Assembly: GCA_904063045.1 (NCBI GenBank)
Contig: CAJFCJ010000018.1
Coordinates: 558,001-622,000, forward strand
DNA length: 64,000 nt
DNA from: Dimorphilus gyrociliatus
Taxonomy: Eukaryota; Animalia; Annelida
Direction: 5' to 3'
The translations under genes and the position numbers were made by a program. This document shows positions 2,999 through 64,000 of the stretch, piece by piece; the stretch's first letter is position 1; every line of letters begins with the position of its first letter. The notes beneath the pieces are model-generated. The model searched no databases and was not told the DNA's origin. It saw only the letters and a program-made list of their open reading frames with translations.

Positions 2999-5900
2999 TG
3001 ATTGTTTAATTAGTTTCTCTGTATGCAAATGGTTATGACATATATTTATTACGGAGTTACACATGGTGAAAAATGATGTTTTTACGGCACCTGTCGTATG
3101 ACCTTTACCATAGATAATCCGCTTAAATAAATGACAGCGCATAAAATTCTATGACAGCTTTTGTTAATGAAACATTGTGCAAAGTTATTGAATTATAATT
3201 TAATTTACATTTTAAAAAAAGTGACAACATTTTATTCATATTTAGATAGTTTTATTTGAATTCAAATGCACGTAGATATATCAGAATTCGCAAATTAAGA
3301 ATTACAAACTCTTTTATTTCATATACATAATTAATAAGAAAATCGATAAATTTTTTCTGAAACCACTTTACAAAGCGTCTTTTGACTCGACCTAAACCGC
3401 TGCGCGGATATGTTTAATGGCTTGTAGGCGGTATTCGGCCATGATAAAGCGAAACCGGTTTCTCAATAACGGTGTAAATCATCTTTGCTACAACTTCAAA
3501 TTGTCCTTTCAATAGCTCTATGAATAAAAAGAAATATAAATTTTTTTAGTCGTCGTCTCTGAAATCGATATAAGCAAATATAAATTCAACGTTGAGAGAA
3601 ATTTAGAGAAAATTTTAAAGTTTATCTTGTGCTAAAAAGTTTACAAGTTTTTTTTACATTCTCATTAATATTCACTAGTCCTTGGAGCATCTATAATCTT
3701 AAATTAAGTAACTCTTCTATTTGATTTTTGTAGTATAAAGATTTCTTGACCCAAATGTACCTGCCAGTAATGCCAGTTAGGGGATATTTAGGACCTATTC
3801 CTGATAAATTTAAGTTAAAAAAAGGGTTTACTCGCATAGGAGTAGGTAAAAGAAATTAAAAAGAAGATTCTCTTGATGAATCTAACTGATTTTAGGTATT
3901 GTTTAACATACATAATTAGTATAAACTATCATGCAGTAATAAATAATGCTGTATACAAAATATTTTATAAACATTGTTTATATTTCTATTCAGACACATA
4001 TCTGTATCTCTATATTAATTTAGATGCATATAGACTAATGTATCTATGCAGGCAGATAGACCATGTGGTCTATAAACGAATCGAATTAGGTCAGTGCTAT
4101 CTACCGTCTGTTAAACATTTTCTCACAATTTGTTTGTGGTAGCCCACCCGCAGTTCGTATGCAAATGTATGATCACATGGTACATTGACGAAAGCTGATT
4201 GGTGAACTGTTTAGCGGCTGTCTTATTTTGTAAAGTAAGTAATTTTGAGTCGAACATTTGGTGCGTAATATTATCAAGAAGTAATTTTGTCTGCTTGATG
4301 CAGAGAATGCACTGTTAAGTAAATCTCAACGAGAAAAAAAGAATAAAAAGGACCGGTAATTTGTACGACATAAAGAAAACATAAGGTTAGTTATAAAACG
4401 TATTTTTATTGTTATTTTACATGCACCGCGACACTTTGGATCGTGTTGCCCTGGTTAAAAACTTGAGCAACGATTAAAACAATTTAATTATTAAATAATT
4501 CAGACATCAAACAAGTGTATAAGAGACAAAAGAGCGTACTTCTAAAGTTTAAAGCGAAAAAATGAGATTTCTAAACCATTTATCTTGAAAATGAAACATA
4601 ATGAAATGTCAGCTATCATTGTGATAAAGAAATTGGAATTAAAAAAAGATTTTCAATAGTAGAATTGTTAAGCAAATAGCTAAAAATTATATCGATACAA
4701 AATTAAAAGATCATAACATGAGATTGAATTTGTATATCCGTACTGCTATTAGTCATTCTTCAAGCAGCCATGACAAAAATTGAGTATTAGAATAAAAAAG
4801 AACATTCGCTTTTCACATGAGGGCGGTTAGAAATTTGAAGTATAAACTCGTGTACATTTATTTCTATTGTAACAAGTGTACTTATGGTGATGTAACAGAT
4901 GGAAATTTTAAATATAATACACTTTGCATTACTTCTTTAGCCAGGTGTGCTTAATCGTATGACCCGAGTCGTTCATTCAATTCCACCTTAATTCAATATG
5001 CTGGTACGTTTAATTTATCATACATCGATAGATATTTGAAGTATATTTATTATTACGTCAAACACTCTTAAGTGTATGTCAAATTAAACTTGAATAATTT
5101 ACGGTGCCACTGTATTTAACAATTCACTGAATGAAACAATTATAACAGTACGCCTCTTATAATTTTCGATCATTTTTTGATACTTAACGTATTATAGAAC
5201 TTAAAAACACCATATCACTTACTAATGACATAAAATCATATAGATTAAATCTAAAACATCCTATAAAAATAACTGGAACCCTTTTCGAACATTTAAACAC
5301 GCAACTTTTCAATTCGTTTTTCTTGTCAATAAGTTGTTTGAATATAGGAAATGTGCTGACATAATTGATAATCGTTCAAGATAATTTTCTTGTAGATGAG
5401 ATAAAAATATACAATGATCCTTCATGTCAACAACAATAACTGTTAACAATATATAGAAAATTGCTCGACATTGTTGATTATCATTTTCGATAACTTCCTC
5501 GCAATGAAAAATCATTTATCACTTATAATTGGTTCTGTTCGATTTTATTTTCTTCATTCTTATTAACTTTATGACGTCTACAGTCTTAGGTTTTGCTTTT
5601 TCGAATATCAACAAAAATAAAAGGATTAATGTTTTAAAGTTTTCTTTGTAAAGACATTCCTAATTCTTAACTAAGTTATTTGGTCGCCCAATTTAAATTT
5701 CGACCACTATAAAACCCTAAATTTCGAAAGCGGGTATTAAAAATTGTACGCGGGTGTCAATCCGATTCTTTATCGAAATAAACTGAACAAAACTCCAAAT
5801 TTATCAGCTTCGTATTGAAAAATGCAATAAAAGCCGTATAAAGAAAAGGCCTAACTTAAAACAGTAGCTTCGTTCGTTGAGAGTCACAAGGGCCGGCCAC

Positions 5901-6590
5901 TTGAACATGCTAGTAAACAATTCACATTCAATATAAAGCTTTGATCTTTGCCGATTTATGACTCGATCACGGAATGCAAGGATTCGATGTCGTAACTTTT
6001 TATTTCCTTCTTTGAGTTCCAGTTATTCGGCATTCGAACAGTGAAACTGCTTGAGACAACAATTTTGTTCATTCGCAAATTTATCGACTGACCCATTTCG
6101 TTAGAACAATGTAACTATGGAGCGATAATTCAGGAATTTATATATTTGCACAGGCAAATATATCTATGTTTTAAGTGTTTGGATGTATTCTCCTAATTTT
6201 CAAATACTTGTGAGTATTCACTTTGCTGCTTCAAAATTCTGTATTTGAAAAATGTAACAAGAAGCTTATTCGCCTAAGAAGTAGGTCACTTTGAGCGACA
6301 GCTTTGTAGAAATAGATTTTACCAAGAGTCTATTCGATTATAAAAATAGAAACGTGTGCACTTGTTTGTATTTGACATAAGGAGAGATGTTTCGTATTAG
6401 CATTATTTCTCGTATAAAGTAAGACTACATAAATATATATATATGAGTAAAAATAGTAAATATATAAATTAATTTATTGTTTTACTGGGGCAGAATTGAA
6501 ATATAAAGACGGTAACAGTATTAAAATTCATATTGCAGTCTGTACATGTAAGCAGAGGCGTATTTTAAAATATCAAGATCAACTTTATTA

Positions 6591-6673
6591 AAACGCTTAT
6601 TGTTTTTACCCTGTAATCAGATGGGGTATATTACGAATCATCCCAGCTGATTCTAGGTAATAACAATACGTTT
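6591..6673 (+). ncRNA. Candidate MIR-10-family pre-miRNA 5' of Post2 (possibly miR-1991-like)
   Basis: Hand-folded stem of about 30 bp with a 12-nt loop (6628-6639). The 5' arm UUACCCUGUAAUCAGAUGGGGU (6606-6627) carries the miR-10 seed ACCCUGU and pairs with 6640-6660. Basal stems TATTGTT/AACAATA and AAACG/CGTTT extend it. Confidence 0.6.
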
Positions 6674-8260
6674 AACAAGCTTCAGGAGATAAAAAGCAGA
6701 CACTTTAATTAATGAAATTTTATATGCTCTTAACAATATTATTTTTCAATTATACTTTTATATATCTAAAACATAAAACACTTAATAGAAACAAATTTAC
6801 AAAACTGATTTTAAATTTAAGAACCTAATGAATTGACCAGTCCGTAGAAAAAAATTAAATAATGATAATATTCATTTGAACTCGGAAAGAATAAAATCGG
6901 AAGATATATAGAGTAATTGAAAATGCGAGGTGGATCTGCTTGAACGCACTATTTATTTTCTAAGGCTTCTAAGTTGTAAAACAATTAATTGAGAATTTTT
7001 AATGTAGAATACAAAAAGACAGCTGTTGCTTTTGTATGAACGTACAGAAAAAACATATACATATTTGAACATGAATACTATACTTAGATATACGGCATAC
7101 ATGTCTACATCTAGATATACATACACACACACATATATATATATATATATATCAAAAAATATAATTCAATGTTAATGCAATGTTCAAAATCCATACGATT
7201 TGTTAGTATCATGGTGTCCGATAATTAAAATTTTTTATGTGAAGATTTTCCTGTATGAAACCATAGAACTGTACTTAATGCATTGTTAACTTATATTTAA
7301 GGTTCATAGTTGAATAATTATGAGTACTCTTTAAGAAATTATTTTGATGTTTGAGCTCTCTAATATGAAAAACTTTCATACTACAAACTATAAATCAATA
7401 TAGCTCAGACTCTATCAATATTTTATCAATTTTTACAACATTTGCTACCGACAGACACAATTGTCTCTCTTGAATTTTATGACCAAATTCAGCGTCTGTT
7501 TTTCTTTCCGTCTTGTTCGTTTATTGCCCCTCCTTTCTTTAACTAACCGGCAAAATTGAATAGAAAGATTTTCTCGGATTAGTCCTATTGTTTAGTCGAA
7601 CCTGCCATAAACATTTTTATCTAAATTGTTACGCCATTTTTATATTTCTAATTTAGAAATTTAACGAAGAGCGTCATCAGCCTAAAAGAAGTTTGAGTGG
7701 ATGACCTAAATGCATAATGAGTGTTAACGCTTTCGCTTCTGCGTGTAGTTAAGTGCTGCGGCGCGCAGAGTTGTTGTGTATTTATACATAATTTTGAGTA
7801 GTAAAAATTCTTCAAAAATGAAATCTCTTTCAAAATAATGGAAATTAAAGACGCAAACTTCATATAATATACTAGAGACGCAAGACTGCTTTCTTTTTTA
7901 TTAGACATGTAACAATTTAGGGATTTTCAACCTCTGAGAGTTGGGATTCATCATACGCAAGCTGCAACTTACAGAAGAGAAAACGAAACTGTATTAAAAA
8001 ACTAAAGGACTTAGCTCTCTTTGGTTGAGGCAATTTAATTCGTTACATAGATAGGAAAATTCCTACGCCAATCGAGAAAAATAGTCCCCTAGCAAATTAT
8101 ATTACTGCGCGCATTTCGCACATCGCCATTTCCCTGCTGTGTCTCGAGCGCTTTTTTGAACAACTGCATTTAACTTTGAGGAAATTTCGCAAATGCCAAG
8201 AGATATACTCTACTTAGTGTTCTCGAAAGATCTTATGTGACTTGGTGACAGCGTAAATAT

Positions 8261-8479: not shown

Positions 8480-9388
8480 ATGGAAACATCGGCTTCCACC
8501 GATCTCGATGTTGGGAGGCGTCCCATGATGAATGCATGGACTGCCTCAGACGCTCCTAATTTATCTCAGATACCGCAATTTTGCAATTTCACGGCAAACA
8601 CACCGTCTTGTAGTTCGATGAACTCATTTAATTCACCGAATCGTATCTCATCATATGCCCCAGAGTACTCGATGACGTCACAGCTTCAGCAGACTTTTCC
8701 CTCCATGAATCCAACCTTTAACTCGAGGACGAACTTACCTTTCTACAATGATATGTATGGACCGTCAGGAACTAGTAATGGTGGAGGTTTTGTTCCAACA
8801 GAATTTCCAGGAGGCATGGGTTCATTATCTAGATTTGAACAGGATCCTAATTTTTACGGCGATACCGCACCTCAAAGTGGAGGTAAGAGGCATGAAATTT
8901 AAGAATATAACTTTTGTAAAATTTTGAAAACTATTAAAAGTTACTAAAAATTAACGTTCGTCTGTAAGTAATTAAAATCTATAGTCTATATGGTTAGATT
9001 ACAATAATTGAATCCAGTATACAGCAAAAAAAGAGCTATTGTAACTTTCTATTCAGATCAACCTCGACAGAGGAAAAAACGTAAGCCTTATACTCGATAC
9101 CAAACTATGGTGTTGGAGTCGGAATTTTTGGGAAATTCCTATATAACTAGGCAAAAAAGATGGGAAATTTCATGTAAACTTCAGCTGACCGAACGACAGG
9201 TACATATGACTATAATATTTTTTAAAAAAAAAGAGATTAGCCATTATTTATCAATTTAGGTGAAAGTTTGGTTTCAAAATCGTCGAATGAAGAAAAAAAA
9301 ACTGGTTGAAAGATCGAAGACAATGATCAAAAATGATGGAATGGATGAGAAAAGAAGCAATAACATTAACGTCAACTCATTTGCATAA
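8480..9388 (+). CDS. Post2: Posterior Hox protein Post2, 3 exons, about 224 aa
   Basis: Exons 8480-8882, 9057-9199 and 9260-9388. The homeodomain [43 protein letters not shown]|[15 protein letters not shown] has the Post2-specific residues. A 60-nt intron lies between homeodomain codons 44 and 45. Confidence 0.95.
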
Positions 9389-9448
9389 TTTGCCATAATT
9401 TCCTGTGCCCTATATTTCTACTACTTTTTCGTGTATAGTTTGTGTAAA

Positions 9449-9468
9449 ATATATATATATATATATAT
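9449..9468. repeat. (AT)n microsatellite
   Basis: About 10 AT units just 3' of the Post2 stop codon. Confidence 0.8.
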
Positions 9469-12400
9469 TTACGAATCGAAGTGGCCTATATTTGTATTTG
9501 TGAGAAACATTATAGAATAATGTTAAATTTTTGTTTTGGTATGTGCTTTGACATAGCGGGCTAGTCTTTTTTCCAATATATTTTGTGCTTGTATTATGTA
9601 TTTTTAATCAATTTATTAGTGCTAATAAGAGATTTATTTATCCATACTTATATTCAGTATACAGTTGTATTTAATATTTTACATGTATTGTATGCGATTG
9701 TTTTTTTAATAAAAAAGATTGAAAATAGTTGAAATTTATATAGAAACGAAAAAATCTACTTTTTCTCCTTAAATCATTTCTTCAGTCGAATTTTTAGTTT
9801 TATGAAGCCTTTGGAGCCACCAAATCGGCGGGGGTTTTATTTTCAATATTAAATACCTGATGTAAATCTCTCTACCGGCTGTTTATGATGATTAATAATT
9901 TGATAAGAAACTTAATTGCAATATAAATCATTATTCGTGTAACTATGTATATATATATATACATATGTAGGGAAATTTATTTATATCTAATGCATATTCA
10001 TATGTTTAACATGCTGTTAAAACTTTTATTCAAAACAATTAAAATTCTCCCGAAAAATAAAATGATTAACATATTTCCATATTCCTTTTCCATTATACCC
10101 TTGTAAAACAAGAAATAAACTATTTTTCACAGCCAATGAAAAGGAATATCTAATGAAATATCTGTAGTCGATAGTAATTTCTTCATGACTAAGCACGAAA
10201 GTTTTAGCAGGATATGCACTCAAATCCTAATTACCTATTAATCTTCGTTGAGGTAGACAGTACAAAAAATTCTAAAAAGTTAAAACCGTCAAATTGCTTC
10301 AATATTTTTGCACCTGTGTGCGTTAACAAACCGTCGGCAAACTTCAAACGTTTGAAAGCGTCTGATAACAGTAAAAGGTCTACGTAAGAACGTCATAAAA
10401 TAATCGTGAATTGTATACGCTTCAGGACAGAACGAACTAAACATATGTTTTATTACATATATTCACTGCTTTGGTTATAGTTCTTACAGAGGACGCGTGG
10501 TTTATGTATATTGATATATGCAGGAGCAATTTTAGCAAGTATCCGTTAAAATCTTTCACCATTTCAATTTTTCAATGAGAAAGGATTAATTATGCATATT
10601 TAGATACGCTATTTTTATATAACATATACTTTATACCTTAATTTTTTACGTTATAGTTGAAATTTAATTAAAACTACTTTCCTTTGAGTAATAACAACAT
10701 TAGGTACTTCTTCAATATATACAAAAAAAGCACACTTTCCATTATAAAACCCCTTTCGATACTCTTCGAATTAAAAATTAATAATACGCTTTCTAGTTTG
10801 CTTTTATCCTTTATACTTTTATTATAAAACTTTTAACAAATAATAAAGTTTTTAACTTTCACAAAGTGGTATATGATTTGATATTTACCTGTAATTAAGA
10901 ACATTGATATCCTCTCATCTTTTCTGGAACGAAACAACAAATCCAACAAGCAAATTGAGCAGGCGAGTATAAATAAGGAAATAAGAGAATTTTTTATGAG
11001 AAAAAGTCAATTCTGATTGGTTTCATATACGAATTTATTCTCTTTTAACGATCCAGAGACGATTGTAACGAAACAATACGATCGTGCCTATTAGCGACAA
11101 TTTCATCCAAGTTTTACTGCTAGCTGAACAACTTTATTATCGTTTATATCGTTCTTTTCTTATACTTATAGACTTCAGGCCTATACTATTGTGGTTCTTT
11201 TTCTCCTTCAGCAATAATACGCTCGCACTTATGACTTCGACAAGATAAACATGCTTTCAAGCTGTCTGTAAATTCTCTTAATATCTATATAAGGCAGCTT
11301 AACGATTAACTTTTTTGTTTCCGCCTTTTCTCACAATTAACATTTTCTTCTCGTAATGTGTCAAAAATTGAATCGAGGACGCCATCTCTGTGTTCAATCC
11401 TACTGTTTGATAATTTTATAGTTTTCAGGGGGCAGCACCATCTTACCATCGCTATTACTTACCTTACATTTTCAAAAAAATTACATTTCTAGGCTTTAGT
11501 ATAAATAGACAGATATATACAAATCAGTACAATCGACGACAGTTAAGAGAATAGGCTATAAATTCTCCCTTAATAGGCTCATACACTTACTCCTGACAGT
11601 TGTCTTTGCAATTTCAAAGCTAGTGTATGAATTGAGAAGCAAATGTTATCTCTTCAAAGACTTTTTCCTATCCGAGTGTTTAAATCTTTAGTATGCTCCA
11701 CCTATAGATCGATTATTAAAGTGTATATCAAAGGAAAAAATCTGATATTGTAAAAAGACACTTTCTAGTTCATTGCAGTTTATAAAACAAATCTATAAAG
11801 CGAACTGATTGAATAGATCTTCTTCAAATTGAATACGATAGTTTTTAGTAAAAAGGAAAGATACAAAGAAATGATATATCTACCAGGTCTATGATAGATA
11901 TAAAATGACAAGAAGTTAATGCATGGATCATATGAAATGGGTAACCAGTTGAGAATATTAGCAACACAAAACAATTGGTTTCTGTCTGCAGAAAGAAACC
12001 AGAATTCGAAAGTAATTGATTACAACTAGAGCTCTTGAGAAAGGAGATATTCTTAAAGAAGCTGAAGATAAAAAATATAGCAAATGTTTACATTGAACTA
12101 TTCTGTCGCTTTTATTCTGTGTCAATGAACGTTAAAAAACCGGATCTTAATGTACAAGAATAAAAACAGATATTTTTAGAACAATTGAAAAAAAGAAAAA
12201 AACATAAGGGAATTCTAGATAAAGTTCTACCATGTAGTAACAATACTTTGAAACCACATATGTCAAAATCAATCATTATATGCCCTAAAACTCTTAAACG
12301 TTCTTTCTTAAACAGTTTCTAAATTTCCTAGAGCTAAGAACATTCTAAGAGTTTATTTATATTTTAAAATTACGTAAAACGACAGAATGGCTCGTTAGAA

Positions 12401-12863
12401 ACCTATAAAATCATGTGTGGTCTTTGTTGAGTCCGTGTTAACACTGCATAATAAAAATCGCAGATAAATATTCTTAAATGATAAATTGTGTTAAATTTTT
12501 TAATATTATCAAATTTTATTAAATTTTTATTACTATTAGTTACATTCTATCATGAACTTCTTGAAAGGATTCTCTTTCAAGTCGTTAATTTATATTCATT
12601 GCATATAGTATTCTGTAGAAAAGAACTTACAGCACATGTGGAACTTCGAAAGTAGTCCCAAAAAGAGTTAGTAATAAATTTTCTTAGCAACAGCAACTAC
12701 TGATTGGCTACTGAAAAAAATGATTTGCATAAGATTCACCGATAGATGGCATAATAGTTGCTCTCCCCTAACATGCTACCCTGCTGTGAACGAGTGATGT
12801 ATATTCATGTTTTTATGGTTCACTACTTTATTTAACACTTTGTTTTTTAACTAATACAAAATA

Positions 12864-14005
12864 ATGAACTATTTTCATAATTCTCTCATGCCTGGATTAT
12901 CCACTGTAGAGAGTGGTTTTTCAATGAGATATGACTATAATCAATATTCACACGAGCAAGCTATTCGAGATCAGCAATTTGTTCATATTGACGGTCAACT
13001 TCATCACAATCTGTCTCCTTGGAATGAACTGCAATCCGCCAATATTTCTCATTCAAGTTTCAACGGCGAAATTCACAACACTGAGCAAACCCATAACGGA
13101 ATTTGTTCAAACACAGTTTTTCAAGCCCCTGCTCCCTATTATCCGTGGATGGGAGTAGTTGGTAAGACATTTTTCCCTTAAAAAACGACTAGCTATAATT
13201 AATTAGTCAATCGAGATTTATTCCCCAAGATATGATAACATTTCTTGGCTTCTTTATGTAAAAACGATTTGATATATGTTCCACAATAAATGTTAGTAAT
13301 TTTATTGTTTATTTATAATACCATCTGCTGTCAATAATTTATAAAGTATACTTTATTAAGTATTATGATGTTGTAAAAGGGATCTTTAGTAATGAGGAAG
13401 AGTAAATATGGTATCTTTGTACAAATGTTACTTTGAGGAGTAAAACTAAAAGAAGTTCATCCTAGCATAGAGTATGTTGAGAAATAATTAGCTATTTGTA
13501 ACAGATGGTTTATATTCATACCTTTTTTTATAATTATGTATATAATTGGCCTCAATTGTATGTTTGGCATAAGCGGTTTTTAATGAGATTTAATCTAAAT
13601 TATATTTAATATACTTTCTACATAACTGCTTCAAGAGAAATTTAGAAATTCATTTTATCCTGACATTTGATAAATTTTAAGACGACTTTCCATCTCTTTT
13701 CTTACTTTGATGTCTATTGACTTTCCTCAGGTCCTAATTCAACACAGAGGAGAAGGGGAAGACAAACTTATAGCCGTTTTCAGACATTAGAACTAGAAAA
13801 GGAATTTCAATTTAACCATTATTTAACAAGGAAGCGACGCATTGAAATTGCTCATAACTTGTGTTTAACGGAAAGACAAATAAAAATTTGGTTCCAGAAT
13901 AGAAGAATGAAATTGAAAAAAGAGAGACAGCAAATTAAGGATATGAATAGTGTAAAGAATGATGGCAAAAAGAAAAATGAAAAGGAGAAAGTGATCACAA
14001 CATAA
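12864..14005 (+). CDS. Lox4: Central Hox protein Lox4, 2 exons, about 190 aa
   Basis: Exons 12864-13161 and 13731-14005. Sequence YYPWMGVV|[84 protein letters not shown] and the UbdA-like ERQQIK parapeptide identify Lox4 rather than Lox2. Confidence 0.93.
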
Positions 14006-17000: not shown

Positions 17001-17877
17001 AAATTTTTATAGTGTACTTCAGTTAGATAACTAAAATTCGAGTGTCTGTTTTTTAATACAGACATATTTAATTGTTAATTTTTTTAATTCAACACCTTTA
17101 AAAATATTTTAAAGTATTCTTTGCTACATTTACTCAACAAAGATATAATACTTCTAACCCTTAAGGATAGAAATAAGCAGGAACTATTTTGTCCAAAAAA
17201 AATTCGACCTACTTTTTTGCCCATTTATAATTCCTTGTCTTCGCCTTTTCAATACGTATTTCCGTTAAAATATTCATTATGCTCTGCGTTCTGTTTTTTG
17301 CTTTTTGGTATATGTACATAAATTAATGCAAGTTTAGATTTTTGTACTGAAATTGGTTTAAAAAAGTAACTATTCTGGAATTTTGTTGTGCACCATATGT
17401 AAAACAAAGATTCGCCATCTGACTCATTATTCGATAGTTTTTCAGCGTAAAAATTGTTGTATAAACCGATAAATATCTACAATGACTTTACATTAATCAA
17501 ATATTTATTTTTGTAATGAATCCGTTGAATTTTCACCTAAAAACTAAGAAATTCTTCGTTTGCAGCTGTAATATTATTTATCATAAGTATTGCCAAAACG
17601 AACGTGTTGACAGAATTATTGATTGATAAAAACTAAGACAAACTGCAAGTGCAGTTCTGATCGGCATCACATTGTTTTCAACGTTTTCCCAGAACACATC
17701 TTGTTTATAAAACTTGGAGTTTAACTTTTAGAAATTTTTATCTGCGAATCTAAAAAATATTTAGCTTTTGTGCATAAAAAATTAATATCTATAGTTAGGA
17801 GAAACTGTGCAAAAGTAACCGTCAATTATTGACTAAATTTGGACTGTGTACAATTGATGAAAGAATATTTTAACAGG

Positions 17878-21244
<3,367 letters not shown>

Positions 21245-28158: not shown

Positions 28159-28222
28159 GAGCTAATGGCGGCTGTTGAGATACTTCTAGGCTACGAGCTC
28201 GCAAATCATTCTCTGCTCGGAC

Positions 28223-48698: not shown

Positions 48699-48778
48699 CA
48701 GTCAGCGGGAGGGACTATACTGTGTACGGCTGGACTGAGCAAGGAAAAATTATTTGCGATCTAAGCATCGCGAAATTA

Positions 48779-52455: not shown

Positions 52456-52477
52456 ATTGGCCGATTTAGACCACGTG
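52456..52477 (+). promoter_or_regulatory. Orphan CCAAT/E-box module 3' of Dfd
   Basis: ATTGG (52456-52460), then 11 nt, then CACGTG (52472-52477). Confidence 0.4.
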
Positions 52478-55451
52478 ATTCATGAAATATAGGCAATTTA
52501 CGTTTTATTTCATATATATTCCTGTGTTTTCAGATTTTTGTTCAGTTTGTTTCGAGAACATTGTATATTTCGAATACTTTGCTTTATATTAGGGTGGATA
52601 TAAATAAACACCTACTACTATTTGGAACATATTTGAAGTGTTAGTGGATTAAATACAAATGTCGCTTTCGGATACACTCTCGTGCTAGATACTTACAATA
52701 TATCATAAATCGATACTGAAACATAGTAAAATTTATTTTCAAAAAGAAAATTGTTATTATTTTCATATTACCCATATATGGAGGATGATATTGGTGATAT
52801 TGCCTTCACCCGGGTATTATCGTTGAAATTGCCCCTATATTTACTATACTTAATTATCCTTGCTCAGTTAAATCAAGTCTGGATAAGATCTGTTCAATTT
52901 AGTTCCTACAATACGCATGTGTAATTCTCTTTGAAAGCAGATGTGCTCTTACTATAAGATGTAAATTATATATATAGGCATTAACATACAAAATGAAGAT
53001 CATGTATATATACATATGTATATATAATTATATGCATAAATATTCTGGAAATAAACTATAATTTGCACCCAATGAAGACTATTTGGAAAAGAAAACTCTT
53101 CTAAATTCACTTAAAAAATCGTTAATTTAAAAAAAGCAATTTCATTTAATATTAATTTGTAAAATCTCCTTTAAGGGAAGCTGTTTTTTTTCATTATACT
53201 ATAGATAAAGTGTGAAAAAGTAGATTTTAAGTAAATAGATCGTAAGAAAAATAATGCAAGAACCGAACTTCTTATACAGCATAACAAAAAGATATTTCAA
53301 AACGAAATAATTACCAGAATGTCTTCTCACATAGATTTTCCCCGATTATCCGTTAAATTTAGTTAGGTTGGGTGTATACATATCGAAATCGTGTTTAAAA
53401 ATGAACAAATTTCCCTCATTAAACTTCTCCTGACCGGGTCGAACTACTCGCAAATATGACTTTGTAACAAAAGCAAGTCGTTAAAACTCAATTTCGCCCC
53501 TTTTTGTTAAAAAGTTTACGACTAGTTTTATTAGGCATTTTACGACTCTTGTTTTTATTGTATAGAGCAACTTTTTGCTTCGTGTAAATTCTGACAAAAA
53601 CGGACGAAATAAAATCTTCACATTTCATGTAGTTGATCTAATTATACTGGATTATTAATTGGGGAGAAGAGAGCCTTCCTAAAAGCCACAGGGAGTTCTA
53701 ACACTCTACCCTTAAATGTAGTTAATATAATATAATTTTCCTAAGATAAATAAAAAAGAGAGGAACATTTTACCCACCGCATAGCGTGAAACATGATATG
53801 TTTATATCACGTGATCGGAAAAGTAGGTCAGAACCGGGTTGGAAAATTTGTAACGAAACGCGTGAAGAATTTTTCTCTGTGTGTTTTTTTCACACGGCAA
53901 TAGCCTTTTCGATAGGAGAAAAAGTGTTCTTAGTCGGAACAATGATATTCATTAAGTTACTATGTGAAAAGATATTGCTTCTTTATAATTGATAATGGAT
54001 CAGAGCTTTTTAAAATAATTCTAAATAATCCATACCGCTGGCAAGTCTTTTACACACAACTTAATCACATTTTTTCTTTGAAAAGCTTATCAAAACTATA
54101 CTTTGATCAATTCAAGATAGGAACAACACGAACTTGTTAAATAGGTCAACATTAGCTTACATATAAACGGTTTTGCTTGTGTTCTTTCTACTGATAAAAC
54201 CACGTTTAATTCATCCCTAGAGTTTCTCTTTTTGTTTTTTTAATGCAGACAAGCCAAGAATACTATAGCAAAAACAGTTTTTACATTGTAACGTTGCCTT
54301 AGCAGGGCACATTTGGTGGTCACGGTGAAGAAAATGAGTCGTAAACAAGCCGTTTTGAATGACTCAATTAGACATGGGTTGTTAATTCGCTTAATTTACT
54401 AGACAGGAACTGTTTTTTGCAGCTGGAAATATTTTCTATAGAAAAAATGCCCTATTTTCTTAGCACGAGAAAAGATTTTTCTCTCTCTCCTTCTCTCTCA
54501 ATAAAATCTCATTCAATCAACGAGTCTGAGAAGGTTGATTGACAAGGCAAAATCAAGCGAAATACGGGATTCGTGTTTCCATGGAAACAGCCAAATAACA
54601 GATCTGTAACGATAGGGGTGGCAGATTAGAAACTTTTCTTGCTATTTTTTTCGCGTTCGAACTTTTCTTTTAATGAGAAACGTTGTATGGAATACAAATT
54701 AAATATTTACACGCTTTTTACGGTTCCTTTTAATCAATTACACTCAACACGTTTCCAAAGTCCAATATTTAAATTTTTTATGAAACTGTAAATTAGTGTA
54801 TATTATGGTTGTGGATTAAATATTATTTCACTATTCACTTTGGGAGATCTTACATTTTTAATCTCATTGGCTATGCAATGAAATTCGTTATGGAATATCT
54901 TTATTTTAAAATCTAATTAAAAAGCGCTAAACCGGTCTTTGTTTTACTGTAGTAGCAGTATTAACGAATTTTTTGTAGCTTTTTTATATAAAAAAGAAGC
55001 TTCATAGTCAAAATCTAATTAGAACGATTTATACTGCAGCAGACGCACGGCAGACGAAATGTGCGATGCATATCGCAAACTGCAACTTTCTATTGATTTA
55101 TTCGATTTCGTTCTTTGTAGTCATTTCTATAGTTTTGAGAGTTATTATCCTTTTTAGAATAAGCTAAAAACTAAAGAATAGTAACTGCAAAATAACATTG
55201 GTCCTGTGTATTCAGATATGTTTTAAGTATAAATACAAGCATATAAATATTATATATATTATACAAACTGTATAATGACAAAATAATAATAAAAAATATT
55301 TATATACAGTACAGATCACTCTGAAATATGTATGGACAAATAAAGAGACGTGTAGACATATTCTAGCTCTATATATATATATATATATTTCTGTCTAAAG
55401 CCTTATAAATATTCATCAGTACGTGCATGCGCAGAAGGAATGGTCGAATGA

Positions 55452-55535: not shown

Positions 55536-58500
55536 AAAATTATCTGGAGTTTGCTCTATCGTAATAAGTAAAGCGCTCACACTGACACGAATTGAGTTAA
55601 AAAAAATAGTGCGTTTGTCTTTCGTCCATCAAGTGCTAATTAACAATTAACTCTAGTGTATTGAGCGGCGTTACACTAAGCGTCTCTAACAACGTCTCCA
55701 TAGAAAATAATTTATTTACGAAAATAGCGTCCCCTGGCGTAGGCGCCAACTCTAATCTTTGTCTGAGTTTTTTTTACAACCGCCATATTGGATTTTGTAT
55801 TTTTTAAAATTATGGTTGTTAACAAAAGAAAACTCTTGTTAGCTAAATAATATTTCTTATATAATATTTAATTAAACAAACAAGTATAAAAAATCGGAAA
55901 AAAGCTTGAAAAATTGCTAATTTCGTTCCACTAACCTAGAGCAACTTAATTACAACGAAAAGTTTTACCATTCTACTCCCAACAAGCAATCGTTAAGAAT
56001 ACTCACTGTAGAATTTTTATAAACATTCGGAATGAAGTTAAATGCTTCTTTTGTTATTTTTATGGCCCGGCCGTAAATACTTGGCGTTCGCTAAGCGGCA
56101 GCCATGTTGAATGGTGCTGAGTGCGTACGTGGAGTGTCAGTGATGGTCATTTTTCATTTTTATGTTCTTCAACGATTCGTCGAAAAACTGTACAGTAGCT
56201 AAGGAGCTGTAATTAAACCTATAGAATAATATTATTCAATATTTTCTAAGCGACCCTTCTGATAAATGAGGTCGCCTTTTGTCCGTCATCTGCGTATAAT
56301 TCTGCGCTTTTTTTGCTATTTAGAAGAGTAAATTAGGCCTGATTTTGACATTAAAAAGCCAATGCCTCTGGTAAGGTGAAACAATTGAAAAATTGAAACA
56401 ATCTGACTGTGTTTATCGTATATTTTTCAGTTTCGAATATATAAAGTACTCCCAACTCTAACAAACTAGTAAAGCTCATAATTTGTTAACTTTATTCAAT
56501 TTCTTTTAAAATATAACGTAACAAAAACGAAATTGAAAAATTTCGTTTATAAATTAACTATAATAACGACTTTATTTCGATATTTTCTTCTTGTTTTAAA
56601 AAGTGAAAGTGTAAAAGTAAATAATTTGTTTTATGTTAACTTTTTATAGAATATTTCGTTTTATATATCATACATCATAGAAATTTAACAATTAAACTTT
56701 TAAAAGTAAGAAGCTACAGAAGGAATAATGGTTTTTTATTCGAATATCTAGAGCCATACATTCAGATATTAAGTGCCAGCAATTTTTTGTGAGTTAAAGG
56801 GAAAACTTTTAGCAACATATATCTAGATTAAGTCTTGTGATTTTTTCCCTAAAGATGATGGATTACTAATGTTTTTCCTCCTAAAAATAATGTTTATCTT
56901 AAACATGAAGTTACCTATTTAAAATGAGGTCTTTATAAAATAATAAAAAAAGTAGGTCATAAATGTATGAACGGAGCCCGTATATTATGCTTGTGGCCAA
57001 TGGTCAGTTTCATTATACTCACCTGTCTAAGTTTAGTGATTGATATGCAGGTATAGTCATCTGTCTTTGTCACACTCACGTCCGGTTCGCTTTCATGTTT
57101 ACCGACAAGTTTACGTCGTCTTATTACTGTTTATTTAACAAAATATTACTATTGAATTGAATTGCAGGTTTAAGCGGATCAACTCTGAATCGATTTCTAT
57201 GGATTGCCTTAAAAATTAATCTCAAAAGTAGATAGTCTTCAATTACATAAAAAAATATTTAACATTTACATTTCTTAGGTTATTAGCATTAATGAAGACA
57301 GACACCTGCAAAATATTCTATTAACTGATTTATCATAACTGAGTTAATTTTATAATCAATGGAAATAGAATATTTTCTAAAAAATTTAAAAAAGACTGTG
57401 CAAAGGAAAAGTACTTTCACCATTAAAAAGCGCCATCTTTCTGATTTTTAAGAAAACTTTCCGTCCATTCGGTTTTAAGAGGACATGATACTTTACTTAA
57501 TACTTTGTAAGAAAAAAGTAGGAAAAAGTAAAAGACTGTAGCATTTGTTTCTTTTTCATTTCAATTTTCTGGTAGGGTGTCTATGAGCAAATATACTAAG
57601 AGAATATGATATAAATAAATTTTATAATAAATTGACTGTCGTGATTATAAAATTTGCACGCTTCTTACTCGTATGTCATCATTATGCGCTTCATTGATCA
57701 CTTCTCGCGTGGCGTTGCGTCATCTATCACTAAAGTTTACACTTGTTGTCAAACTTAATAGTCTTTGAAGTTCCAAGTGTTTAAATATCAATGACATATT
57801 AACAATACTTAGTGATTATGTTCACACTTAATTGATATAGCTTTTTTTAGCAATCAATACTACTATTAAAAAATAATATTTTTGCAAGCGCTTTCAATTT
57901 ATGTATTTTTTCGGCGTAGTTTCCAGCATTTCAGTAACATTTCGCCTCGCATTGGAACGAGATAAATATAATATTTTAATAGTGTCAGATATATGAGATA
58001 GATGGCGAAGGTAGTACCTTATAGTTCTCTAGTGAGACTACAGATGGCATTACGAATACATTAGCAAAAAACTTTAAATAGGTCACGCTACAATTTTTCC
58101 AACATGTGAAACGTGATACTTTGTTTGAATATCTTTTAAATTAATTGTTTTAGCATTTAGATTATTTTTTATTTAGGAGTTTTCAACTTTTATTCCATGT
58201 TAAAAAACATATAATTTTTAAATGAATATTGCAAAAGTGTAAAAATTTCACTCACTTTCGAATATATAAAATAAAAATTATAAAACTTTCACTTCTGAAT
58301 CAGTTCTTTCACTCTTTTTTTTCTAAATTGGACGCATATAAAAATAAGAGCCGTAAAGGAAGAGGAAAGTAAATAAGCAATTAGCCGAGCATCTCAGCGG
58401 ATTAGTCACAAACGAATGTAATCAGATGAATCTTCACGCTCTAGAACACACTATATCTTTTCTTGCCCTTTTTTTTATTCTCAACATCAGCGTTCTACAT

Positions 58501-61500
58501 TTATATTTATACATATATACAGCTACGTTACCGAAATGTTAAAAATATTACTTGCTTTGATTAAAGTGCTTAATGAAAAAAATGCTGCCAAAGCTCTAGT
58601 AAATACGAATAAAAAGTTGATTAATATAAATGAAAACAATTTGTAAAACATCTTTTTACATAGTTATTTATATATTATACTTGAATAGCTAATTGGCAAG
58701 ACTTACTACGCACAGTAAGGCACGTAACAAGTAGGGTTCCGCTGATATCGTAACACTTATATTACGTAATTCGTTGGGTAACTAACAGCGTAAATCACAA
58801 ACGGTACATCCGCCAGATTTTAAACGAGTTTTAAACGACGCTTTTATGCAAATTATCAAACATATTTAAAATATTTTCTAAGAATGTAAGCTTACCGATG
58901 CTAGTTGACAATCAGCCTTATTATCCTCTACTGAACTGTCAACGTTTGAGGAAAGCTTTTCATTTACTTCATTTAAATTTTACAACGTAGGCAATTAACG
59001 AAAAAAGGATCTGTCTTCCAAATAACGTTATCTGAGCCTCCTTAGCAGGGGGGACTTAGTTTACAACTCGAAAACAAGATTTCCTTTTAATGTAATTAAG
59101 CATATCTAGGCAGATGTTTATAATGAAAGAATTACTATTCAAGTCTTGATTAAAAATTTAATGAAAAATCGTTTTAGAAAACCTCTTAAAACACCGATCG
59201 GTGATTTTCGTTAAAAACAGGGTCGTGTTTTGAACAGCCTTTGTTATGGCGATCTTTAAAGCGCATTAATTTGCATTTTATGGCGAGTTGTTTCGCATAC
59301 TAATTAGCTACTTGATAATTTACTCTTCGCATCGCTTGTTCTTGTATTCGTTGTCATAAATTTAGCGTGAAAATGTTTTATAAAGTACTGTAATTTACAA
59401 TGTTGGATGTACAACAAAGATGAAATGTTCTAATTTTAAGAAAGCTGAGCTTACATGGTATATTAAGTTTTTACCAGATAACACCATCAAATTAAATTAT
59501 ACTTTTTTCATATACATGTAAAATAAAATATTTCATGCTATAGTGACCTATAATTCACCCTTTCACCTCATTATTTTCAATCGAATAATGGTATTATAAA
59601 TATTAATGGTACATAGTTCTCTTTTCTTTTTTCCAAAAAATTTGCGACAAGCTGTCAGCAAACTGGCAAACTGCCTCTCCGATATAGGCAAAGAGGACCA
59701 AATGTTCCACTTAGAGATCTTCGTTTTAAATCGTTTTAGCGGAAACTGCTAAGGAAAAGAGAATTTTTTTAGATTGCATTGCGTCTTGTGGGGCCTGGCT
59801 ACGTGTTAATCCGTTTACGTTAGACACGCGCATATCAACAGCGAAATCGATAATAATTTAGCCCGGTTTCGTCCGAAAGGATCAGATTAGGATAGTGCAT
59901 AATTGCGTACTGCCTTCTACGCGTGTTCGATTTTTTCTCGAATTGGAATTTAGAGTAGAGTTTTTTATTAATCCTTTATTCTCGCCGGTAAGAATCTGTG
60001 GATTTTTTTGGGCGTTTTCCCTGGAGAAACTCTGCAAACGGTTTTTGCATTTCGGGCACATTTTTGAGGTAAATCGCTGGAGAATTATCGCTCCGAGATG
60101 CGTTTGTATATTTTGTAGTTATTTCTTCTATCAAAAAACTTCATGGGGGTCGACCAATTTTATTCTTAAGTCGAAAACAATGTCATTTTAAGTACTACAG
60201 TGAAAAAATTCGAAATTCTAAAGAAAAGTTTGAATGATTCAAGATTTTTTTTAATTTAAATTAAAGTAATATTGAATTGATAAAATATTGTTTATTATTA
60301 TTTTCGAAACGATACTAGTAGTTTTAATTTATACTACTTTTTCCCCATTAATAAGGAAAATTTACTACTAGTACGATATTTCTAGCATAATAAATAAAAT
60401 GATCAATTTGTTTTCAATTCAACATCTTTTATAGATAATTTATTTGTTTTTATGATTGAAAGGGAATATGTCTTTCAATATCATTTTATATATATGAAAT
60501 TCTGTCGGCTAAAGTTAGAGGTAAAGTAGGTCATATGGTAAGCAGGTGGTGCGTATTGCTAACGGCCACGGGAAGACAGAAGAAAGATAAGGTGAGAAGC
60601 GGAGGAAAGTAAAGATAAGATAAAAAACACAGAAAGTATATTTTATATTTTGATGGTACGCCAGATTCTTGTTTTAATACTGAGGGGACATTTGATTTAT
60701 CTATGTTGATTTAATTATCATAATATGTCTTTTATAAATTCAAGTTTTTTCTTTACAAAAAATAGAAAATGTTTTCTTTTTTAATACGTTTTCGTTTTCT
60801 ACTTTTCCAATGACATATTTTTAAACCGGAACAGAGAGAAGCTTTCAACATTCTCGGCAGTTGCATATGAATAGCACTCGAGTTGAAAAGGAAGGCTGCT
60901 AATATGCAAATGAGGTTCGAATGCATGCGCCCCCATTGCTCAGATTCGAGTGTCATCATTCATTGCTCACCCTTTCTACTTTGCAGATAGAATTTCAAGG
61001 TATGTATCTATATATTAGCACTTTACTAATTCAAATCATTTAAGCGTAATCTGGGCTCACATTTAGTTTATATACCACTTCAATGCCATAAATAATGATG
61101 ATTGCTTTTAATGATCACGGGTTAAAGGTTAAACTGTCTCTGATATCATTCTTTTTCCGATCCCTTCAATTATGACGTCATTCCGTGAAAAGTTTTTTTA
61201 TAAAATTAGTAGCGACTTTAACAGTAGGTACCGTACATTCCCAATTGCGTCATTTATTACATCATTTAAAGGCAATTTGAATTGTGGTATACTGGTAAAA
61301 TGTACAAGAACTATTTTTCTTAGACAGTCTAAAGTACAATTTTCTGTTCTGATTGTAAGATTTGATCCATTAAAGAATATTTCTTTACAAGGAAAAACCT
61401 GTTTTTACTTTTTATATTCATGTTTAACTACAAGGCGCTGCAAGAAATATATTTACAATCTAACGACAAAGTTCTTTATTTTAAATAAAAATGTCTTAGA

Positions 61501-64000
61501 CAGATTGTGAAAGCTATAAACGAATTTATCTATGATTTTAAAGTAAAAACTTGGATAAAACTATATTATACTTAAGTAATTTTTTCGACTTTTAAAGACA
61601 TTTAGCATGAGTTTTTCACTAGCAAAAAAAGTATAATTACTATTGCCGGAAGCTCTTTCTATAAGACATATGCTAGTTGAAACAATATGCGGGTGGAATA
61701 ATATATTATACCCATCGATTTCAAACACGTGCATACCTCATATATTGTGAATAATTGGTTCATATCTCTTTCAAAGCTAGACGAAACATATTGATGTCTA
61801 AATACAATAAAAAATAAAATGAAAATGTTTGCCAAGCATAAAAAATGTATATTTAATTTAAAATAGATGACAAGGTTAGGTCAAAAGCGGAACAGTTAAG
61901 AGGTCACTATTTTTGAGATTTAGCAGGCTCTAGGAAAGTATTATCTACTGATCTCTGTGAACATATACTATTTAAAAGCTAAATATTGTTTGACTATGTT
62001 CGCTTAACATATTACAATAGATGTATATTGATTTAATTGGTAAGAATTTATGAGTCTGAGTTTTCTTTAAACTAGGTTACGCCTATAGCATTATAGGTAA
62101 GAAGCGAATCTGTGAAGCCCTTAAGTATTTTTAGGATTAAGCTACAAGTAGATATTCAATAGTTATAGAAAACTATTATAAATAAAACTAAGCAGAAAGA
62201 AATTGAAGGAGAAAGCTTAATTTAAGTAGAAAAGATATGTAATTTAGCAAAAATCGGATATTTTTGAAAGAGAGCTTTAAAATCGTTCGATCTGAATGAA
62301 ATGTAAACACTCAACTATAAAAAATCAAATATCATTTTTGTTACGTATAATAATTAATAGAAAATTTGAAAATAATGATAATTTAAACTTACCTTGCTGA
62401 ATGCTTTATTTCGTGGCGATTTCTTTTTTTCAGCGGCCATTTTGCTTTAAGTAGGTCATTAATCAACAAGCAGCGCCCTCTGTAAATACATTCGATAAAT
62501 ATTATATTGAGGGGTTTTTTCTTACAAAATCCAACTTTTTTCTCAGCTAAACGTGAACTGAGATAATTATCTAGAAAAAAACAACTTCTGTAAGCCATTT
62601 GGCAAATAAATGCAAGATGCGCACGCATCGAATCACGCGCATTTCTAGAAACTCGGACAGATGAAAGCAATTTATTCAACGTTCCATCAGTCATGCTTTA
62701 TTTGTCAATTATATGATTCTTTCGTTCGAAGTTGGGCTATAATTCGATTTTAGAAGAACGTTCGGTGTACATCGATTTGATTAAATAGGTCAAAAGGCAT
62801 CGTCTTATGTATTTCTTTGAAGTTTTCTTAAATATTTTGACTGACAAGGCAGGAGTTTAACAGATGTTCTTGTTTATAAAACGGATCCATTTGAACACGG
62901 CTGGAACATTTACAACGCTTAGTTTGCTCTTTGTCTATTATATATTGATATATATATGCATAATTCAATGAAAAGTGAATAAATGTAGCCTTCATAATGA
63001 TAAATTAATGACGATATCATTTGAAATCGTAAATAATGCTACTATGCTATTTAAATAAAAAATGTTCTTCCTCTGGTTTAAAAATTATCAAACGGGTATA
63101 GATAACAGGGCAGAACCTTTTTTAATTTAATTTATACCTTTATTTCGTTTTTTAGGACTCTTAGGATTTTATAGGTCAACTATTATATTCTATTATTATC
63201 AGGTTACTCTTATATAAACTCTTTAAGGTCAATCTTAAAATTTTAATTATATTTGTACGGTATTAAATTGGTATTGATTTTTTAAATAATTACAAAGGTC
63301 AGAAACTTTTTGAAAAGTTTGTCATCCTGCATTGATATAGATAATAATTCAGATGGTGCGACAGCGGGTGAAGCGCATGAGCGACTTCGTTTCACATCAA
63401 TGCGCATTGCCGCCATGTTCGATTTTGCTCAAGTTTCTTTTTTGTAAACGCAGTTTATCAAGTTAACTATATTACTATGTTACATTCTTTATAAAGGTAT
63501 GGTATTAACGTATTTTTTTCCCAATATTTCAATGTCTCTCTATCAGATATATATAGTACTTTTATAAAAAGTTTCACTTTGTATTGTTTCCAGTCGATAT
63601 TTTACGCATAGAACTTGATAATTATTATTATATTTTTAATTAGTTAACTTTTTATTCTTTTGTAACCGAAATATGTAATAATGAATTTCGTTTTCACTAT
63701 TAAACATTTCTTGGTTTTAAACTTTAATAGATTCGCAATCAGACGATAGATGGCACAACGAGTTGCTTTTTAAAATAGAATCAGCGCGTCTAAATTGTTC
63801 TTTTCTAGAGTCTTATATTACACGGATATATAAGAGACATAAAGCAAGAATTAAATACCATGAAATGGGTTTTAAAACTCTTATAATTCTTACACAGTTA
63901 TTAAGCAGGAATAAAATAAAATAGATATCCTATAAACGAGTAAATATAAGATTAGTTGTTATTATGGAGATAAATTGAAGGGATAAAGCATTGCGATTTA

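Follow-up and report, generated by a model that had tools for sequence, protein, structure and literature searches.

Hox genes and mir-10-family hairpins of the window

We analysed a window of 64,000 nt of contig CAJFCJ010000018.1 from the Hox cluster of the tiny marine worm Dimorphilus gyrociliatus. Homeodomain and hexapeptide scans identified six Hox genes on the plus strand, arranged from posterior to anterior (Table 1), whose names were inferred from signature peptides, canonical cluster orientation and PMC7854359. The Hox complement of the species comprises nine genes and lacks lox2 and post1 (PMC7854359). As comparator served one close relative, represented by one collinear contig of 86 kb with ~71% identity over aligned positions. 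This contig ends at about 55.1 kb of the window, and the conservation test covers the sites up to there.

Three hairpins were assigned to the mir-10 family (Rfam RF00104). The hairpin 3' of Antp is predicted to fold at -25.7 kcal/mol and shows 75% identity to the sequence of the relative, which retains the seed, and the one at the canonical Scr/Dfd position (fold -21.5) is 99% identical amid ~71%-identical surroundings. For the hairpin in the Dfd-Hox3 gap the predicted fold is -25.2 on the minus strand versus -14.4 on the plus strand. The intergenic gaps contain spliced non-coding transcripts running across them, and the site cluster at 37199..38685 overlaps an exon and an intron of a minus-strand spliced transcript.

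Table 1. Hox genes, mir-10-family hairpins and T(A/G)GGTCA sites in the window, with the state of the sites in the close relative
Feature	Position	Strand	Evidence or sites	State in the relative
Six Hox genes	8480..50014	+	homeodomain and hexapeptide scans
Post2	8480-9385	+	posterior-type signature peptide
Lox4	12864-14002	+
Antp	17839-21241	+
Lox5	28223-30798	+	signature KLTGP
Scr	34222-35600	+
Dfd	48722-50014	+	signature LPNTK
mir-10-family hairpin 3' of Antp	21669-21741	+	RF00104, 48 bits, above gathering score
mir-10 hairpin, canonical Scr/Dfd position	42303-42369	+	RF00104, 31.3 bits, E 0.0015
mir-10-family hairpin, Dfd-Hox3 gap	55456-55529	-	RF00104, 45.8 bits, just below gathering score
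TAGGTCA outside array	2775..2781	+	probable splice acceptor ...ttttag/GTCA of GPCR gene	not conserved
Posterior edge of array, between GPCR gene and Post2	4087..7708		TAGGTCA 4087(+), 6282(+), 7702(-); TGGGTCA 6089(-)	4087, 6282 exact; 7702 is TGGGTCA; 6089 is TAGGTCA
Lox4-Antp gap	16316..16997	+	extended sites 16316-16326 (TAAATAGGTCA), 16579-16589 (TGGGTCA type), 16987-16997	16320 kept; 16583, 16991 not
Antp-Lox5 gap, site cluster	22232..24027	both	8 T(A/G)GGTCA in 1.8 kb: 22236, 22337, 22634, 22765(-), 22856, 23012(-), 23749(-), 24021	22765, 22856, 24021 exact; 22337, 22634 G to A; 22236, 23012, 23749 absent
Scr-Dfd gap, densest cluster	37199..38685	both	7 TAGGTCA in 1.5 kb: 37199(-), 37343, 37444, 37592, 37923, 38410(-), 38679(-)	37199, 37444 (small shift), 37923, 38410 kept; 37592 is TGGGTCA; 37343, 38679 absent
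Scr-Dfd gap, four spaced sites	41307..45060		41307(-), 42481(-), 43828(-), 45054(+)	4/4 exact; substitutions at -1 (N) and +7 only
Downstream of Dfd	51334..54148		51334(-), 53824(+), 54142(+)	3/3 exact
Dfd-Hox3 gap	56949..63178		8 TAGGTCA: 56953, 58079, 59544(-), 60527, 61877, 62452, 62786, 63172; full WAWN extension on five

Enrichment and layout of extended TAGGTCA sites

The heptamer TAGGTCA occurs 33 times in the window (21 on the plus and 12 on the minus strand), exactly as counted in the original prediction, whose coordinates all agree with ours, its list mixing heptamer starts from the two strands. Dinucleotide shuffles of the window, a background proposed earlier as a check, gave 5.12 ± 2.27 copies with a maximum of 12, close to the previous zero-order expectation of 6-7, and none of 100 shuffles reached the observed number, a strong excess in the window. 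The full RORE pattern WAWNTRGGTCA was found 27 times versus 1.13 ± 1.08 after shuffling (0/100 shuffles reaching the observed count), and the A/T-rich 5' extension that had been claimed is real. When 7-mers were ranked by over-representation, TAGGTCA came highest after the (TA)n microsatellite.

The receptors NR1F (ROR/HR3) and NR1D (Rev-erb/E75) recognise an extended half-site, contacting the half-site itself through their zinc-finger core and the A/T-rich 5' flank through a C-terminal extension. Among the 33 copies of TAGGTCA, position -4 is A or T in 28, -3 is A in 27, and -2 is A in 23 and T in 7 (A/T in 30/33), while -1 is a free base (A10/C4/G12/T7). Enrichment among the half-site variants compared is restricted to T-AGGTCA (33 vs 4.9 expected) and T-GGGTCA (9 vs 2.6); with A, C or G preceding AGGTCA, counts of 10/5/7 against 6.4/2.6/2.5 represent a rise of only ~1.6- to 2.8-fold. 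A second half-site within 0-10 bp, even generously defined, accompanies 2 of the 42 T(A/G)GGTCA sites, indicating that the sites are monomeric. The sites thus combine a T before the half-site, W-A-W plus a free base, A or G as first base, and no obligatory second half-site, as in a RORE.

Extended half-sites of the NR5A/ERR type (FTZ-F1/SF-1/ERR), with TCA or TNA 5' of AGGTCA, do not account for the array: TCAAGGTCA does not occur in the window, YCAAGGYCA occurs twice, and CAAGGTCA once versus 1.0 expected. AAAGGTCA was found 4 times versus 2.5 expected. The absence of NR5A/ERR-type extensions and the lack of NR4A-type enrichment are consistent with the RORE reading. Direct repeats as in RAREs were rejected as well: among the 42 sites, no DR2 and a single DR5-like pair (59544) were found. 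The 40-bp flanks of all 33 TAGGTCA copies are mutually unrelated, which speaks against a dispersed repeat, MITE or satellite. Outside coding sequence the strand split is 20+/12- (P = 0.22), i.e. without bias, and whichever way a site points, the conserved extension is on its 5' side; an element acting at the RNA level (miRNA seed match, RBP site) was rejected on these grounds. No enrichment of A after TAGGTCA was found among the window sites, and no partner word near the sites was significantly enriched after multiple testing. A YY1-like ATGGCG/ATGGCC core lies within 25 bp of five sites.

TAGGTCA is absent from all six Hox gene bodies, introns included. The avoidance of coding exons noted in the original prediction holds except for the copy at 2775, which resembles a splice acceptor and lacks the A-rich extension. 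Its two empty zones, 7.7-16.3 kb and 24.0-37.2 kb, are indeed free of TAGGTCA, with TGGGTCA variants at 28143, 35541 and 36823. The placement of the sites in miRNA-bearing gaps was likewise borne out, with one mir-10-family hairpin in each of the three motif-rich gaps. The Antp-Lox5 site cluster lies 0.5-2.3 kb downstream of the hairpin of its gap, and site 42481 is 112 bp downstream of the conserved mir-10 hairpin. Outside the dense clusters many sites are spaced at ~1-2.5 kb.

Conservation and posterior limit of the array

Conservation, also proposed earlier as a check, was examined in the Hox cluster of the one relative. There, 15-17 of 24 non-coding TAGGTCA sites are kept exactly and two more have become TGGGTCA, well above the 18.5% retention of other 7-mers, both globally and locally within ±150 bp (P = 2e-6 to 3e-8). 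TAGGTCA is the fourth most conserved of 1388 frequent words, the top three being motifs known from open chromatin of the species. Identity per position is highest at -3 and -2 (0.92/0.83) and in the core (0.79-0.96) and low at the degenerate -1 (0.50) and at +7 (0.46); most flanking positions fall in the range 0.5-0.8. Five orthologous sites differ by an A/G exchange at the purine position; the exchanges go both ways and leave the remaining bases of the site unchanged. Turnover between the two species amounts to 17 shared and 5-8 lineage-specific sites. Judged from this alignment, the sites are under purifying selection, and their conservation footprint mirrors which positions of the motif are degenerate.

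On the contig of the relative, a 39.65-kb non-Hox posterior flank contains no site, versus 28 in the 46.7-kb Hox part (P = 3e-8 by length, 4e-6 by ORF-free length), this one-sided, gene-dense flank of ~40 kb standing in for a genome-wide background. The first site appears, after 39.65 kb without any, in the region matching 4087..7708. Equal density elsewhere, which would speak against the original prediction, is thus not seen on this flank. In ORF-free DNA the numbers are 0 in 22 kb of flank versus 28 in 40 kb inside; TCACGTGA, AGATGGCG, TAGGCCT and other regulatory words likewise occur more often in the Hox part than in this gene-dense flank, and regulatory richness therefore accounts for some of the contrast. 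In the sequences compared, the posterior edge of the array coincides with that of the cluster. A separate 20-kb Hox-like locus, a low-power test, showed no enrichment (2 sites vs 1.8 expected). Taken together, the enrichment, the unrelated flanks, the specificity, the conservation and the one-sided bound indicate selected, monomeric, RORE-type sites.

Candidate binders and a probable shared input to the cluster

Given that the relative keeps most copies and lacks them in the 40 kb beyond the posterior end, a single factor probably supplies the entire Hox cluster with a shared input. We put at roughly 60% the probability that the ~40 candidate monomeric W-A-W-N-T-(A/G)-GGTCA sites are NR1F/NR1D-type elements providing this common input, and the ROR/Rev-erb-type monomer reading of the original prediction passes every sequence-level test run. 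On this reading, the DNA-binding domains of putative D. gyrociliatus HR3/ROR and E75/Rev-erb proteins would be expected to bind AAAGTAGGTCA. The array would be bound either by one receptor or by an activator and a repressor that compete for each site, and the bound array would provide a common input to every Hox gene and to the mir-10 genes in between, which could be a cluster-wide on/off signal layered over gene-specific promoters. The dense clusters at 22.2-24.0 kb and 37.2-38.7 kb would serve as enhancers or silencers, and the sites spaced at ~1-2.5 kb elsewhere as distributed docking points.

RORE/RevRE elements are known from the vertebrate circadian clock, e.g. the Bmal1 promoter, where the activator ROR and the repressor Rev-erb compete. 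The array shares with them the (A/T)A(A/T)NT(A/G)GGTCA extended half-site, which is bound by monomers in the clock system, but known targets have 1-2 promoter sites, whereas here ~40, seen in sequence, extend over >60 kb of a developmental cluster. Vertebrate Hox RAREs (RAR/RXR) are likewise nuclear-receptor sites in or beside a Hox cluster and share a hormonal or temporal input among Hox genes; those are DR2/DR5 heterodimer sites, few per cluster, in contrast to the far more numerous, monomeric, RORE-type sites of Dimorphilus. As in Drosophila segmentation enhancers with clustered sites for a single transcription factor, there are many orientation-independent copies with partial turnover and maintained density, but those enhancers are usually modules of 0.5-1 kb, whereas here two modules lie inside a larger array, whose limit is the posterior edge of the cluster. 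In insects, the activator HR3 and the repressor E75 compete as monomers for the same element (PMC4263706). In C. elegans, NHR-23 (ROR) and NHR-85 (Rev-erb) drive pulses of lin-4 transcription (bioRxiv 10.1101/2022.09.26.509508), a link of this receptor class to a developmental-timing miRNA that parallels the presence of a mir-10-family hairpin in every motif-rich gap. The nematode system, however, is phase-locked to moulting and uses a single upstream element, whereas Dimorphilus does not moult and its sites are not concentrated at the hairpins.

Genuine monomer elements read by another nuclear receptor, either lineage-specific or one with a C-terminal extension such as E78/NR1E, are possible but unlikely. 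Motif identity does not separate receptors with a common P-box and a similar extension; yet the consensus does not deviate from the textbook RORE/RevRE at any informative position, the A/G tolerance included, and NR1F and NR1D are conserved in lophotrochozoans, HR3/ROR and E75/Rev-erb genes being documented in molluscs (PMC4388693). It is quite improbable that the word is read by an architectural or chromatin factor other than a receptor, for example at docking sites that help to build the 80-kb Hox TAD or that recruit Polycomb/Trithorax-type complexes, even though the array ends together with the cluster on the posterior side, many sites lie at 1-2.5 kb intervals and not in classical enhancers, and YY1-like cores accompany five of them. 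We know of no non-receptor factor that reads WAWNT(A/G)GGTCA, and partner words lack significant enrichment. The span of the array is comparable to the 80-kb TAD, but the motif at TAD boundaries is YY1-like and not TAGGTCA (2026 preprint).

It is very unlikely that TAGGTCA is a regulatory word used generally in this genome, common near every developmental gene that has long intergenic regions and in no way Hox-specific. The 25 ten-mer and first four twelve-mer de novo HOMER motifs listed for adult-stage ATAC-seq peaks include AGATGGCGCY, TCACGTGACC, GGTCAAGGTC and NDTAGGCCTA but not TAGGTCA (PMC7854359). Other words, TAGGCCT among them, share the preference for the Hox part, yet the ORF-free flank of the relative is devoid of sites. 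The shuffles (0/100 for each pattern), the unrelated flanks, the lack of strand bias and of A enrichment after the site, and the selection on a DNA-type 5' extension largely refute an origin of the enrichment by chance, from composition or from a decayed dispersed repeat. They likewise largely refute a function at the RNA level, for instance as a miRNA seed match in Hox transcripts, although TAGGTCA is complementary to a UGACCUA seed and spliced transcripts cross the gaps.

Under the NR1F/NR1D reading, a shared input would agree with published data that most Hox genes of this species become active nearly simultaneously (PMC7854359) and that its Hox cluster lies within an 80-kb TAD (2026 preprint). 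Joint activation is easier to reconcile with a common switch than with the nuclear-receptor oscillator that the original prediction suggested may gate the cluster. Rather unlikely, in our estimation, is the further-reaching proposal that a single ROR/HR3-Rev-erb/E75-type switch acting through ~40 sites turns the whole Hox cluster and its mir-10 genes on and off as a unit, gated by a hormone or metabolite and replacing temporal collinearity in a miniaturised annelid, which would give the moulting/clock receptor pair a role in developmental timing outside Ecdysozoa.

A literature search found no paper describing such an array. Outside vertebrates and flies it is still an open question how whole Hox clusters are activated, and recent studies of annelids suggest control at the level of the cluster (a Hox TAD, a distal enhancer) with the transcription factors unnamed. 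The array is a concrete candidate input: selected, built from one defined receptor-type site and ending at the posterior edge of the cluster, it is directly testable in a species whose Hox genes fire together. An HR3/E75-like binder would mean that the ROR/Rev-erb timing module also operates in a spiralian that does not moult and is linked there to the regulation of Hox and mir-10 genes.

Count and form of the TAGGTCA sites

Motif search of the window recovered 33 TAGGTCA heptamers (21 on + and 12 on -), in count and coordinates the same as in the original prediction, compared to 5.12 ± 2.27 in dinucleotide shuffles, none of 100 of which reached this number. Since GC content is flat along the window (29-34%), composition does not explain the count, and in an unbiased k-mer scan of the window TAGGTCA was the top over-represented 7-mer once the (TA)n microsatellite was set aside. 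The A/T-rich 5' extension of RORE type that had been claimed was borne out: counted upstream from the heptamer, position -4 is A or T in 28/33 sites, -3 is A in 27/33 and -2 is A in 23/33 or T in 7/33, while -1 is unconstrained (A10/C4/G12/T7); the bases 3' of the heptamer have background composition. Matches to the complete pattern WAWNTRGGTCA number 27 versus 1.13 ± 1.08 expected, and all fall within 16.3-62.8 kb of the window. As monomers, the nuclear receptors ROR/HR3 (NR1F) and Rev-erb/E75 (NR1D) classically bind (A/T)A(A/T)NT(A/G)GGTCA.

Strong enrichment is limited to T-AGGTCA (33 vs 4.9) and T-GGGTCA (9 vs 2.6); A-, C- and G-AGGTCA occur 10, 5 and 7 times versus 6.4, 2.6 and 2.5 expected, approximately 1.6- to 2.8-fold. 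The NR5A/ERR-type TCAAGGTCA had no match in the window, and the NR4A-type AAAGGTCA had 4 versus 2.5 expected. A second half-site lies within 10 bp of only 2/42 T[AG]GGTCA sites, which implies that the sites are monomeric, and a dimeric DR, IR or RevDR2 arrangement was rejected on this count. The sites cluster modestly along the window, with 11 gaps between neighbours below 400 bp (P = 0.018). Separately, a palindrome lies 75 bp upstream of the start codon of Lox5: TGACCC-T-GGGTCA, which joins two outward-facing nuclear-receptor half-sites. Its surrounding 36 bp are 97% identical in the related taxon compared below; judged by its sequence, it may be a site for a receptor dimer, separate from the array of monomer sites.

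A composite element with a partner word was also rejected, as no 5- or 6-mer within ±40 bp was significant after multiple testing. A YY1-like ATGGCG/ATGGCC core lies 2-25 bp from TAGGTCA in 5/32 sites (e.g. TAGGTCA-AC-ATGGCG and TAGGTCA-GA-ATGGCC), which overall is not significant. A 2026 preprint describes an 80-kb TAD that encloses the Hox cluster, and finds YY1-like motifs at TAD boundaries. That a non-receptor architectural factor binds the array appears quite improbable.

Conservation of the sites in a close relative

The Dfd first exon, used as a protein query, matched an ORF with 96% identity on the Logan contig SRR23372228_118940 (86,354 nt), which was rebuilt by stepwise exact look-ups with overlapping pieces joined without conflicts. 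This contig of a closely related taxon aligns collinearly with the window from ~-36 kb to 55.1 kb, with 71% identity over aligned positions. Conservation counts cover the window up to 55.1 kb; the last eight sites on the right and the array's anterior boundary lie beyond. SRR23372229 and SRR23372216 are 99.96-100% identical to the relative and hence represent the same taxon, which gives one independent comparator only. No homologues were found with the ORF at 61172-61510 of the window as query.

The relative keeps 15 of the 24 non-coding TAGGTCA of the window inside the overlap under strict column-wise comparison and 17 when small alignment shifts are allowed; besides these 17, two read TGGGTCA and five are absent. 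Other non-coding 7-mers are conserved at 18.5% (GC-matched, 19.4%; within ±150 bp of the sites, 18.5%), corresponding to P = 2e-6 (strict) to 3e-8. When both purine variants are counted, 24/34 sites persist, and A and G are exchanged at five sites in both directions, as would be predicted for a binder that accepts both purines. Eight lineage-specific TAGGTCA in the relative imply site turnover at roughly constant density, and the exonic/splice-site TAGGTCA at 2775 is not conserved. Aggregated over the sites, identity reaches 0.92 at -3 and 0.83 at -2, drops to 0.50 at -1, the degenerate position, and is 0.79-0.96 over the heptamer and 0.46 at +7, the base following it, with flanks mostly at 0.5-0.8; this profile is the footprint of the motif.

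In conservation, TAGGTCA ranked fourth of the 1388 words that occur at least 10 times in non-coding DNA, after TCACGTG (23 non-coding, 83%), AGATGGC (11, 82%) and CCAATCA (12, 67%). These three match the open-chromatin de novo motifs TCACGTGACC, AGATGGCGCY and ACCAATCASC in the published HOMER table for D. gyrociliatus (PMC7854359). CACGTGA and CCAATCA words occur window-wide, e.g. at 34-52 kb.

Distribution of the sites in and around the Hox cluster

Homeodomain and hexapeptide scans located six Hox genes in the window, all on the + strand. Based on signature peptides (posterior-type RKPY... in gene 1, KLTGP in gene 4, LPNTK in gene 6) and the canonical orientation of Hox clusters, their order is probably Post2, Lox4, Antp, Lox5, Scr, Dfd. 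This set of genes agrees with the compact nine-gene Hox cluster published for the species, which lacks lox2 and post1 (PMC7854359). No TAGGTCA lies in the bodies, introns included, of the six genes. As originally proposed, the motif-rich gaps bear miRNAs, with one mir-10-family hairpin in each of three such gaps. The mir-10-type seed ACCCTGTA is common to these and to a fourth hairpin outside the posterior end.

Features of the window, with TAGGTCA counts per interval
Feature	Position	Strand	Remark
GPCR gene	0.7-3.3 kb		outside posterior end of cluster
GPCR-Post2 interval			3 TAGGTCA
Post2-Lox4 interval			0 TAGGTCA
Lox4-Antp interval			2 TAGGTCA
Antp-Lox5 interval			5 TAGGTCA; 9 counting TGGGTCA
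Lox5-Scr interval			0 TAGGTCA
Scr-Dfd interval			11 TAGGTCA
Dfd to window end			11 TAGGTCA
mir-10-type hairpin, fourth	6591-6673	+	86% conserved
mir-10-family hairpin	21669-21741	+	sole one of four above Rfam gathering score
mir-10 hairpin	42303-42369	+	canonical Scr-Dfd position; 99% identical in relative, surroundings ~71%
mir-10-family hairpin	55456-55529	-	good fold on minus strand only; antisense to Hox genes
TAGGTCA and YY1-like core	16320-16340, 23998-24027, 42470-42491, 62428-62458		proximity
TGACCC-T-GGGTCA palindrome	28137-28150
Antisense transcript	32074-42200	-	spliced, non-coding
Introns of antisense transcript	38551-38640; 38923-39090 or 38923-39401; 40899-41692; 41540-41605	-	GT..AG

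The Scr-Dfd gap is also crossed by an antisense transcript, in whose region no ORF of at least 90 aa was found. A loose end at 37828 mapping to 32074-32103 implies a further intron, 32104-37827, which encloses the whole Scr gene. The evidence for this transcript comes from Logan contigs of four runs (X2-X5), labelled 'DNA?' yet behaving as RNA assemblies.

The first 39,650 nt of the relative's contig contain neither TAGGTCA nor WAWNTRGGTCA, compared to 28 and 23 in the other 46.7 kb, with the array starting ~0.9 kb beyond the GPCR gene. For 0/28 sites to fall in the flank by chance, P = 3e-8 when the two parts are weighted by length and 4e-6 when only ORF-free length is counted; the background here is a one-sided local flank and not genome-wide. 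Equal motif density across the genome had been named as counting against the original prediction, and for this single flank the densities clearly differ. Besides the GPCR gene, the posterior flank contains over ten non-Hox genes (including GCN1-like HEAT, HEXIM, two PP2C exons, Arf-family GTPase, F-box/LRR, C2H2 zinc finger and BRCT), so that outside Post2 a gene-dense housekeeping flank changes abruptly to a gene-poor, motif-rich Hox domain. Other regulatory words are also commoner in the cluster than in the flank (TCACGTGA 9 vs 1, AGATGGCG 6 vs 1), and part of the contrast thus stems from the cluster being rich in regulatory sequence; 28 versus 0 is unmatched by any other word. At a more distant Hox-like locus with large introns (20 kb, ENA contig), a low-power test, TAGGTCA occurs twice versus 1.8 expected and WAWNTRGGTCA is absent. 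That the motif is a genome-wide regulatory word is very unlikely. Within the cluster the array extends across the intergenic DNA, and the posterior flank has none of it.

The 40-bp flanks of all TAGGTCA copies, aligned in motif orientation, are mutually unrelated and the array is therefore not a dispersed repeat, an explanation that the original prediction had itself raised. An RNA or miRNA-target reading was rejected as well, because strand bias is absent (20 on +, 12 on -; P = 0.22) and A after the site is not enriched. Chance, a repeat or an RNA element as the source of the array is hardly conceivable. By the criteria of sequence comparison, the array consists of selected, monomeric, RORE-type sites on double-stranded DNA.

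Candidate binders and proposed input to the cluster

Nuclear receptors are mentioned neither in the genome paper (PMC7854359) nor in the 2026 TAD preprint, and a literature search pairing RORE-type elements with Hox returned nothing relevant. An annelid ATAC study named NKX and GATA motifs for the Owenia and Capitella Hox clusters. HR3, ROR, E75 and Rev-erb are encoded in molluscs (PMC4388693), and NHR-23/NHR-85 acting on lin-4 in C. elegans provides a precedent (bioRxiv 10.1101/2022.09.26.509508). The oscillator reading of the array is not supported by the present data.

We propose that the array is bound by an activator of ROR/HR3 type, a repressor of Rev-erb/E75 type, or both; another nuclear receptor as the binder is considered unlikely. 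According to the genome paper (PMC7854359), most Hox genes of this species start transcription together at late gastrula, and temporal collinearity is lacking. The bound receptor or receptors may give the Hox and mir-10 genes a shared input, which would fit simultaneous activation.
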